From NCBI RefSeq assembly GCF_000143415.4, contig NW_003314264.1:3585229-3649228 (forward strand): 64,000 nucleotides of DNA, in the 5' to 3' direction. This document shows positions 18,064 through 22,186 of this stretch, in pieces. The notes beneath the pieces were generated by a model. The model was not told the origin of the DNA. It made no database searches and was given only the letters and a program-made list of their open reading frames with translations. The translations under genes and the position numbers were made by a program. Within the stretch, counting starts at the first letter, position 1. Each line of letters starts with the position of its first letter. This stretch comes from Selaginella moellendorffii. Its lineage: Eukaryota > Plantae > Lycopodiophyta.

Positions 18064-19154
18064 CTAGGTTGAAAGGAAAGAAAGAACTTTGCAAGAGTAA
18101 GTACCAAGAATGCCACACTGCGAAATGACAATCTTTGCATATGGTCGATTGAATCCCCTCTCAGCGACCACTGCTCGGGTATCGCCTATAAGCTTGGCAG
18201 TACTGTGGGGATCCGCGATGAGATTTTTCCCAAGGAACGAAGAGAAGAAAATACGTACCGGAAGTAAAGATTGCTCGTGTTATCTTTGACCACCCTGGTA
18301 CTCGCGATCTTCCGGACAACGTCCAGGCCTTCTACCACCCGGCCTACCACCGAATTCGTTGGATCAAGCTCCGGAGCATCCTCAAAGGCAATGCAAAACT
18401 CAGTCCCGTTTGGATCCGGCCGTGACTCTTCGTATACGACTTCAAACTTCCCGTCGCGAGCTATAAGTTTCGGCTTTGCTGGAGGCTTTGTGGCATCTAT
18501 GGCCATGATCGAAACCGCACCTTTCACGTTCTTCGGCCGTTTCCCCGTCTCGTCTAGCGTTTTCATCTCGCTGGCTAGAGCTTTAGCGTCTAGACCACCT
18601 GCGAATTGAGCTGTATCCTTGGCTCTACCGCTCAGGCTGAAGGTCCTGAGGCCTCCATTCTGTATGTAGTTCCCTGTTATCTTGTAAAAATCTCGCTTCC
18701 TATAACTCACTCCCTTCTGACCAGCCGCAATCTCTCCAAAGCGTCTGGCGCCCACTGGTACGTCGTCTTCGTAGAGTCCAACGACGACGCGGCCTGCCGG
18801 TTCTCCATCGATGCTGATGTCCAGAAAAACTTTGCGTGTCACAGTTGGACACGGCTCTTCGTCAGCGAAAGCAAAATTGTCATAAGTACCGTGCAATGCC
18901 CCTAGTGTATACACTGCTTGAGCAACAAAGCTGCGTTTTCCAGTTGAGAAACTTAAGAAAGGGTTTTCATTCTCTTTTGCTCCAGCGGATTTCCTATATA
19001 CAATGTCAGTATTATATATATCAAGAAACTACACACCCGCGTTCTTTCGTTTTTCTCTAGCATGCAATGTAAATAGCATACCTTCTGCGACACTAATAAC
19101 CCTTTCTAATGTGTTTATACCGACCACATAACTATGAACGGGTTGCTGAATCAT
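18064..19154 (-). CDS. CYP26-2: Thylakoid-lumen cyclophilin CYP26-2-like; main exon 18993-18259; 5' exons and stop uncertain
   Basis: KVFLDISIDGEPAGRVVVGLY...PNGTEFCI...VVGRVVEGLDVV...|TAKLIGDTRAVVAERGFNRPYAKI; KRSF..AFA lumenal-signal-like segment. Confidence 0.8.
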
Positions 19155-19581
19155 GCTCTATCGAAAGCAGAATTCATCTGCCAAAACCGAAAAGGTACTT
19201 AGTACCTGTTGAAATGTATGCATATGCATGGTAACTTCAGCACCTAGAGATGGAATAATTCTTACCCTCGAGAAAATGGAAGCGAGAGAATCGCTAGAAC
19301 AACCTTGATAACCTTTTCAGGAATTCCACTGAAATTAAACATGTCAATAAGGGAAGCAACAAGCAATTTAGCTCAATACCTTTTTTTCTCATCTAGCGCT
19401 TTCACTTCGGATTTCTTCGTGGCGTCCGATTCAACCCTGAGGAAGAGGCTATTTAGTAGCTGTTGAAATATGCGTTTACATTTTGACCACTGCCCATACG
19501 CGCAAAACAAACTTACCGGACTTTGCTTTTGCTACAAATATACGAACAAGCAACCACAACATGGAGTTTAAGTTTCGCGCA

Positions 19582-21995
19582 TTACTTCTCGTCAAAATCA
19601 TAAATGCAAGATCCATTGTCACTCCTTGCGGTTGGGTCATAGTTCGCTGCATTGGGGTCTGCGCACCCTTCAGGCACTGGAATGTTAACCTGTTGTGCGG
19701 CCTTTCCTGAATCAATAATATACAGAGGTCCAGCAGAGGATAAGAAAAAACAAGTAGTTACCGTAAATGTTGGATTTATCGGCGACGGAAATTTTGGGTT
19801 TAGAAGCTTCAGCAGAAAAGTCATATTCGCAAGTTCCATCATCGCTTCTTGCAGTCGGATCGAAATTAGCAGCATTGGGATCGGTACAACCCTCAGGAAC
19901 TGGAAGATTGATTTGCTGTGCAGCTTTTCCTGAAAAAACAATGGTTAACAATCTCTCAGGTGTTTTAGAGAACGTACCATATAAATTATTTTTTTCAGCT
20001 TTTTGACCTTTGGAAAAATCATAAACACAAGTTCCATCATCGCTTCTTGCCGTTGGATCGAAGTTTATAGCATTGGAATCGGTACATCCCTCCGGCACTG
20101 GAAGATTAATCTGTTGTGCAGCCTTGCCTGGTAGAAATGTTCAAGCAAGCAAATAAAAGAAAAACGCACGAGCTTAAATGCTTACCATACAAATTGTCTT
20201 GTTTCAAAGAACTCGTTGCGGGAGTTTTCTCAGCAAAATCATATTCACAAGTTCCGTCATCACTTCTGGCCGTAGGATCGAAGTTTCTTGCGAAGGGATC
20301 AGCGCAGCCTTCTGGAACTGGAAGCTTGACCGCTTGGGCAGCTTTGCCTGCAGTTAAAATGTTCCTCTAAGAAAAGAGAAAGAACGGCGAGTTTTTCTTT
20401 TTTACCGTAGAAGGTATCCTTCTCCCTTTCATCCTCATTTGCATCACCCAAGGAACTCCCCTTCATATACTTATCAGCCAGATGATATCGCTTCACATTC
20501 TCCTGCTCTTTAACAAGCATATTTCCATATTCGAGTAGCTTGTCAATCGTCATGGGAGGCTTTGGAAAAGTCGGGGGACCATCCTTAGAGTTGACCAGCT
20601 TCGGGCCTATATTTTCCACCCCAACCTGGGTAATCCACTTTCTAACCTCGTCATCGTAGACTCGGGCCCTCAGAGCACCAAAGAAGTCTGTTTCACTTCA
20701 CGTTAGTCACAAAAGAATGCCTATAACAATACTCTTCTTACCTATAGATTGTCCTGGAAAGGTGTCCACAAGTTTAACGATGTCCTCATCAGGTACCTCG
20801 TCACTTCTGAAAATGCCTTTACAAACGCCAATCCTGTCCTCCCTTGTAGGCGCCCAGTAGAACTTCTCCATGCGACCGTCACGGATCAAAGGTGCATACA
20901 AAGTCGAGAAATCGTTTCCAGTCACAATGATCGGAACTCGGGGTAACTCCTCCTTGGTGTAAATTCCAGGCAGTTGGACGTTGGTTGGATTGTCCGCGAT
21001 GTTCATCAGTGTTGCATTTACCATCTGGTTGTTGACGGTGTACTGCGTAGTCCCTCCCATTCTTCCAGCACCGGCATCCAGGTCGTTGATAAACAAGACG
21101 CACATTTGGCCTTTCTTCTTGATAATATCAGCTGCTTCCCGATATCTCTGTCGGATTAGCTTTGCAGGTTCTCCAGCATTGCCGCTCTCGAGCTCTCCAG
21201 CGCTCATTGCAATGGGACTGGGGTATAGTCACAGAAAACCCAATCAGTTACAGAGTCATCTCGCTTTTACCACCTTACTTGATTCCTAGTTTGGAAAACA
21301 CCAATTCGCACTGAAATGATTTTCCTTGTCCTTTGCCTCCCCAAACACCGAGAATAAGAGGAACCTGGAAATGGTTTTCCAATTAGCAAGCAAGCCAGCA
21401 GACCATTGGAAGCCACTCCCACCTTAATATTCGGAAGAGCCATGAAATTCTTGGAAATGTGAATGACGAGCTTGTCCATGAACGCTGGAGCGATGTATAA
21501 CCCATCGATGGTGTTATCCATAGAGTAGCTGAAAATTCCAGTCTAAGATGGAAAAATCCGAGCGAAAGAGAAGAACAAAGAAAGAAACTTACACGCGCTG
21601 AGCGGTGTTGAGGTACTCGAGACTCGACATAACGGCAGTCTGCGTTCCTCCTCCTTGAGGGCCTTGATACAGCGAATCCACCATCCCCTTTCCTCTCGTA
21701 ATATCCTGCTGATCATCCGACGTATCGGTCCCCAGGCCTTGCCATCGATCGGTTTTGCTCTGGGAGGATTCATCCACTTGGCAGACTACACGACCTTTGG
21801 CCCGGAAATTCCCCGCGCGAGCACTGAAATCATGCTGATGCACGACGCTGCCGTGAAATGCCGATGAGAGTGGCGATCTTGCGCCAATTGGATGCGCGGA
21901 TGCCTGAATTCCATGGAAATTTCATCAGTGCGTAGATATCTCTAGAGAATGATAGCGCGAGTTACCTGCACTAGGAGCTGCATTGACGCTGCCAT
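19582..21995 (-). CDS. RCA: Rubisco activase (AAA+) with four tandem redox C-terminal extension exons; may extend to 19199 via extra exons
   Basis: [22 protein letters not shown]; Walker A GGKGQGKS; Walker [10 protein letters not shown]; [16 protein letters not shown]; repeat exons 20347-20186, 20127-19978, 19929-19762, 19706-19582. Confidence 0.96.
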
Positions 21996-22186
21996 TGCTT
22001 GATCGAGGAGCCCAGCTCGGCTTACAAACAGAGTGTTGCCCTAGGGATTATTCGTTCTCAACGGCTACAGTCGTGCCACGTTTGAGGGGCTTATCCCAAG
22101 GGAAAGCACTAGAATGCGCCACGTGGACGGATTTTTATCCCATATTTTCCCTCCAAAATTTCAAGGCTTAGGGTTCTAATGTTTTA
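21996..22186. promoter_or_regulatory. Bidirectional RCA/LPA3 promoter with G-box and I-box light-response elements
   Basis: GCCACGTGG at 22118-22126, GCCACGTT at 22075-22082, CTTATCC (GGATAAG) at 22090-22096 within 191 bp between divergent ATGs. Confidence 0.65.

Follow-up and report, generated by a model that had tools for sequence, protein, structure and literature searches.

Rubisco activase (RCA) is a stromal enzyme that helps to maintain Rubisco, the enzyme of carbon fixation, in its working state, and the C-terminal tail of its alpha isoform couples Rubisco activity to light through thioredoxin. In Arabidopsis, the oxidised alpha tail interacts with the nucleotide pocket and so raises inhibition by ADP; thioredoxin f undoes the effect, and alpha subunits impose redox control on mixed oligomers. 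In many plants, but not all, the same gene also yields a beta form, through splicing at the boundary between core and tail. No solved RCA structure that we know of shows the tail, and how it inhibits the AAA+ ring has so far only been modelled. A similar logic, in which a short cysteine-pair peptide gates an enzyme by light, is found in the C-terminal extension of GapB and in CP12, where cysteine-pair tails place Calvin-cycle enzymes under thioredoxin control. These peptides are probably folded only conditionally. They are present once per chain, we know of no described array of them, and we know of no sequence relationship between them and the RCA tail. Here, an RCA gene of the lycophyte Selaginella moellendorffii is described in which the tail module occurs four times in series. 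The gene lies at 21995-19582 on the minus strand of a 64,000-nucleotide (nt) stretch of contig NW_003314264.1, which in its entirety is referred to as the window, and it is the only RCA gene there, with exactly four modules.

The closest described system is the Arabidopsis RCA-alpha, with its thioredoxin-f-regulated Cys392/Cys411 tail, and the Selaginella protein has the same AAA+ core and helical subdomain. As in plant alpha RCAs generally, the tail starts at the same point (..FYGKAAQQ), displays the same PEGC-x18-C-xY motif and likewise occupies one or more exons of its own downstream of a phase-1 intron. However, whereas plant alpha RCA possesses a single module, the Selaginella gene carries four in series, each in a symmetric exon. 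The first of these exons (20347-20186, minus strand as are all that follow; 162 nt, phase 1-1) encodes a module with the ending C-x18-C-EYDF and a linker of 17 residues. The second (20127-19978; 150 nt) and third (19929-19762; 168 nt) are also of phase 1-1, and the fourth (19706-19582; 125 nt) ends with ..CIYDFDEK and the stop codon TAA at 19584-19582. AG precedes and GT follows each of the four, and all are entered in phase 1. Every module encodes (G)KAAQ..PVPEGC-x18-C-xYDF, for eight cysteines altogether, and the first three each add a linker of 12-18 residues that terminates in Tyr. The second Cys of one module is thereby separated from the first Cys of the next by approximately 33 residues. 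Each module keeps both Cys, their 18-residue separation and the neighbouring residues found in seed-plant tails, and repeat 3 shares 64-89% identity with the other repeats and with those tails. Accordingly, the defining feature of an alpha-type tail, namely two Cys 18 residues apart in a conserved context after the AAA+ core, is present four times. An initial annotation of this DNA, made from the letters alone, had given the coordinates, lengths and phases of the module exons and the eight cysteines, all of which are correct in the spliced model. It had also placed LPVPEGC in every repeat, which is accurate for repeats 1-3, while repeat 4 reads IPVPEGC. The four-module architecture of the gene is thus confirmed.

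Upstream of the tail modules, the gene is predicted to encode a standard green-type Rubisco activase. It consists of 10 exons, separated by introns of 48-64 nt that are all of the GT-AG type, and the spliced open reading frame is an uninterrupted 1896 nt, or 631 codons. Exons 1-6 (20406-21995, minus strand) encode the transit peptide, the N-domain, the AAA+ core and the helical subdomain. This identity is assigned because the exons match the Pfam AAA model (PF00004, E = 4e-12), because exons 5 and 6 together span the RCA-specific helical subdomain (PF21228, RuBisCO_activase_AAA_helical) from end to end, with E = 3e-9 and 1e-23, and because exon 5 aligns over its whole length to the solved RCAs of Arabidopsis and tobacco (4W5W, 3T15) with E ~1e-91. 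The Walker A (GGKGQGKS) and Walker B (LFINDLDAG) motifs are also legible in the spliced translation. Exons 1 (21995-21966), 2 (21903-21593), 3 (21528-21423) and 4 (21364-21279) are followed by exon 5 (21217-20742), which is the exon that matches the solved plant structures, and by exon 6 (20687-20406), with which the core ends in ..KDTFY.

Evidence of transcription was drawn from the assembled contigs of four sequencing runs (X1, X4, X7 and X14), each from a different study, aligned to 19100-22100. Assembled contigs lose rare variants, and minor isoforms could escape such a comparison. The runs that contain the stretch hold approximately 0.6 of its sampled words, a fraction close to its exon share. 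Every predicted RCA junction, including those of exons 1-4, was found with GT-AG ends in spliced contigs of the four runs, and contig depth over the RCA introns in this region was zero. As the contigs are spliced, they are derived from RNA. Single contigs of 2027, 1758, 2073 and 1203 nt pass through exon 6 and the four module exons in order, and the outcome that would have spoken against the initial annotation, transcripts with only one repeat exon, was not what these contigs showed. The major form among the assembled transcripts is the message with four modules.

The module cores share 68-80% identity at the level of DNA. Pairwise synonymous divergence (dS) between modules ranges from 1.2 to saturated, nonsynonymous divergence (dN) is 0.10-0.19, and the dN/dS ratio, a comparison that had been proposed with the initial annotation, is 0.05-0.10 in the four of six pairs for which it could be computed, with each module intact. 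A comparison of the introns between the modules revealed no evident likeness. Nine differences separate the transcript contigs from the genome; each is synonymous, and two fall within module 4. Because synonymous sites are highly diverged or saturated, dN/dS is low and the contig differences are synonymous, the duplications are old and each copy has been maintained by purifying selection.

A broader kinship of the module emerged when repeat 3 was searched against 1.84 billion representative proteins. Among the best 150 of the 8587 matches (E <= 0.001), none is an RCA; these are proteins of 409-6618 residues with 9-55 matched stretches each. Their repeats follow the consensus G-C-T-D-P-x-A-x-N-[YF]-[DN]-P-x-A-x-x-D-D-G-[ST]-C-x-Y; the C-x18-C spacing is found in 1500 of 1588 modules, and the RCA tail agrees with this consensus at every position that shows at least 80% conservation. 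The named carriers are proteins of Flavobacteriales metagenome-assembled genomes with sorting domains of the type IX secretion system (T9SS), together with genes of Tara Oceans. Pfam and NCBIfam hold no model for the repeat. A profile built from 1420 non-plant modules, which had themselves been collected by their resemblance to the RCA repeat, matches the RCA tail with a full-sequence E of 2e-33 at Z = 1.8e9, which places the four-module array far above chance. Taken singly at the same Z, modules 1-4 score 35.5, 41.5, 41.5 and 29.5 bits, with E of 5e-4, 7e-6, 7e-6 and 0.04, respectively. In a six-frame profile scan of the window, the four modules gave 33-44 bits and the next best segment 13.5 bits. 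The link of the RCA module to this non-plant repeat family is solid at the level of sequence. The bacterial and marine repeats share the consensus, the spacing and the tandem arrangement of the RCA tail, but, unlike the stromal RCA, they are extracellular, do not have the GKAAQQ..PVPE lead-in and are contiguous within one reading frame, whereas in RCA each module has its own exon.

Two further observations concern the array proteins. About 37% of their modules have an additional Cys at loop position 6, and about 17% have one at loop position 14. Positions 72-101 of the Pfam PsaN model (PF05479) match bacterial modules (P0017:1043-1070; P0096:40-130) at 38 bits, above the cutoff of that model, and the RCA modules are unmatched by it.

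The sole match in a sequence search of the PDB is MPEG1/perforin-2 (6U2J/6U23; residues 331-354, with a statistically weak E = 0.038), which shares the motif and spacing of the RCA module. This is a pore-forming animal protein that belongs to the secretory pathway, and it carries the module in single copy. The matching region is a small folded "EGF-like" linker, and is the only solved copy found. An AlphaFold2 model of repeat 3, generated from a module alignment of 105 rows, has a predicted local distance difference test score (pLDDT) of ~89 in the loop core and 55-65 in the flanks. Foldseek of this model against the PDB returned three rows, all of them MPEG1, with a root-mean-square deviation of 0.9-2.3 A over 25-30 columns and a non-significant E of 0.7-3.3, and VIA-align of the module against MPEG1 gave no Z >= 2, the unit being too small for such statistics. 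The fold link to the MPEG1 copy is accordingly suggestive only. The RCA module appears to fold autonomously, since it is arrayed in 9-55 copies elsewhere, its modelled loop attains the pLDDT given above and its relative in the PDB is a small folded region.

It is proposed that the Selaginella gene is a functional, expressed RCA gene and that its tail is a multivalent, redox-gated autoinhibitory array, generated by old exon duplications and present with all four modules in the main mRNA. The probability that we attach to this reading is roughly 0.55. The mechanism is extrapolated from work on the Arabidopsis alpha isoform, reportedly that of Zhang and Portis in 1999 and of Wang and Portis in 2006. 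In the dark, each module would close its disulfide to form a small folded loop, and this loop would dock at a nucleotide pocket of the AAA+ ring to increase inhibition by ADP. In the light, thioredoxin f would reduce the modules and release them from the ring. Owing to the linkers of ~33 residues from Cys to Cys, one subunit might reach several pockets, and dark inactivation would then be multivalent and either stronger or steeper; full release would need four separate reductions. Graded or cooperative redox control by the four modules, as the initial annotation had envisaged, is plausible as a hypothesis. Several points weigh against the proposal. Outside RCA, the C-x18-C family is extracellular and its disulfides are presumably structural, such that the arrays found elsewhere are uninformative on redox switching. 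In addition, the contig data are unable to rank isoforms, and a second product of the gene, with a hydrophobic tail, hints at another role.

This second product arises from an alternative intron (19437-19585, minus strand) whose GT donor, 19585-19584, lies within the last sense codon and the stop codon, and whose use removes the stop. The corresponding skip of 149 nt was found in contigs of X4 and X14. A second donor at 19516-19515, with a skip of 80 nt, was found in contigs of X1, X4 and X7. Both donors share one acceptor, from which the exon restarts at 19436, and three downstream exons follow on the minus strand (19436-19380, 19328-19266 and 19177 to ~19082), with the joints 19380/19328 and 19266/19177 present in contigs. 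In the form of 631 residues, which retains the stop, exon 10 continues to 19517 and is followed by three introns of the 3' untranslated region. The stop lies 66 nt upstream of the first of these three downstream junctions, and a stop so placed can draw nonsense-mediated decay. The alternative form, of 671 residues, reads through 19436-19380 and 19328-19266 into the exon at 19177, to a stop TGA at 19176-19174. Its additional tail of 41 residues, VESDATKK..VIKVVLAILSLPFSRG, is partly hydrophobic and includes VIKVVLAILSLPF; the hydrophobic stretch comprises 13 residues.

Such a product would suit an explanation in which the extra modules take no part in redox regulation and instead constitute a folded or spacer array that binds a partner or a metal, or that presents the hydrophobic tail to the thylakoid membrane. 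It is consistent with this that the family is typically a repeated bead within secreted multidomain proteins, and that the alternative 3' splice appends its 13-residue hydrophobic stretch after module 4. However, all four copies retain the RCA-specific flanks that are conserved in seed-plant tails, which argues for the same interaction as that of the canonical tail. Moreover, a purely structural disulfide is unlikely in the stroma, where illumination brings reducing conditions. An array of this kind is therefore considered unlikely.

The initial annotation had favoured a different use of the repeats, in which symmetric phase-1 cassette exons are skipped, or their introns retained, to give RCAs with 0-4 modules that tune redox control. 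The gene would indeed permit it, as module exons 1-3 are multiples of 3 in phase 1-1 and any skip would keep the frame. Retention of the 58-nt intron 6 shifts the frame, just as had been predicted, and leads to a stop at 20301-20299 and a beta-like product of 465 residues. Intron 8 (19930-19977, 48 nt) is in frame and without stops, and its retention would lengthen the stretch between modules 2 and 3 by 16 residues, for a product of 647 residues; this was not seen in contigs. Further in its favour, S. moellendorffii "activase 1" isoforms are numbered up to X5 in Table 1 of the review PMC9951593. Nevertheless, the contigs of the four studies contain constitutive joints only in the repeat region, with no intron depth, and no exon-skipping or intron-retention joint was found there, with the proviso that contigs drop rare forms. 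A beta-type joint at the core/tail boundary was likewise absent from the contigs of the four runs, in which rare forms may be lost. In contrast to the alpha/beta pairs of other plants, splicing in Selaginella instead removes the stop after module 4 to add 41 residues. Every alternative joint in the contigs is located 3' of repeat 4, at the stop codon and the 3' end of the gene. The proposed range of isoforms thus finds no support in these contigs, and we judge it improbable. Because the same Table 1 of PMC9951593 lists an "activase 2" beside the "activase 1" isoforms, shorter RCAs from other S. moellendorffii genes may be available as partners of the long form. In the proteome of Selaginella bryopteris an RCA spot was recorded at 44 kDa, which is uninformative on the long form.

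It could also be supposed that the tail is disordered and tolerant and that its extra copies are functionless products of a neutral expansion, as the linkers vary both in length (12-18 residues) and in sequence. This is very hard to reconcile with dN/dS of 0.05-0.10 despite saturated synonymous sites, and with the retention of eight of eight cysteines in the absence of frameshifts or stops, and it is regarded as highly improbable. That errors of assembly or gene prediction account for the number of repeats, a view for which nothing was found beyond the fact that the GenBank model of the locus is itself doubtful, can be dismissed with near certainty, as the copies are only 68-80% identical and have different introns and as independent transcript contigs reproduce their order and every junction. 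The initial annotation had already thought an assembly artefact unlikely, and unexpressed pseudo-exons are rejected on like grounds, since all four studies yielded spliced contigs with these exons and the copies have diverged.

The GenBank model in question, on GL377568.1 (GCA_000143415.2; L001:1720-5688, equivalent to 18186-21995 of the window), fuses RCA to a downstream cyclophilin reading frame (18186-18914) in a product of 961 residues, and it is on account of this fusion that the model is doubted. No support for an RCA-cyclophilin fusion was seen, and the transcript contig of X14 stops near 19082. A four-module protein is nonetheless implicit in the public annotation.

Relatives in other plants were sought by fragment searches, with a two-module genomic stretch and a conifer tail as queries. 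These returned only single modules, mostly the terminal exons of seed-plant alpha RCAs, and no multi-module RCA. Two metagenomic plant contigs (L003 and L004) each encode one module followed by a stop. In L004:7-490, a stretch similar to exon 6 precedes an intron and one module that ends in ..YDFKEEK and a stop, and this end resembles that of module 4. Metagenomes of the Joint Genome Institute (JGI) were searched with a degenerate DNA pattern, composed of a module end, 95-125 nt and the next KAAQQ, which gave five matches, none of them RCA and one a bacterial-type array. As regards prior description, the initial annotation knew of no report of this architecture, and none was found in the open literature searched, although the survey of RCA gene structure by Nagarajan and Gill (2018) was not covered. 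A literature search by motif strings yielded nothing relevant. The kinship of the RCA tail with the bacterial and MPEG1 module is also undescribed in the open literature searched. What appears to be new here, as judged from sequence comparison, is therefore the membership of the RCA module in a large, unnamed repeat family.

Taken together with the array proposal, this membership invites a more far-reaching scenario. The RCA redox tail would not have been invented by plants but would be a captured copy of an ancient, mobile and self-folding disulfide-loop module, known otherwise from bacterial secreted arrays and animal perforin-2. In this lycophyte it would have been arrayed anew, and the four oxidised loops of each subunit would act multivalently on several pockets of the hexamer. 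As a combined claim this is tentative, and on balance doubtful.

For the biology of RCA, a natural enzyme with four tails offers a ready dose series, with which it could be asked whether a tail acts on the pocket of its own subunit or on those of its neighbours, and whether several tails are additive or cooperative. With one of its members solved, the repeat family supplies a structural template that can be tested, as well as a clue to the origin of the switch. If the tail is indeed a captured module, it would find its first structural template in the MPEG1 copy. With respect to engineering, the Selaginella gene indicates that the RCA tail tolerates tandem stacking.
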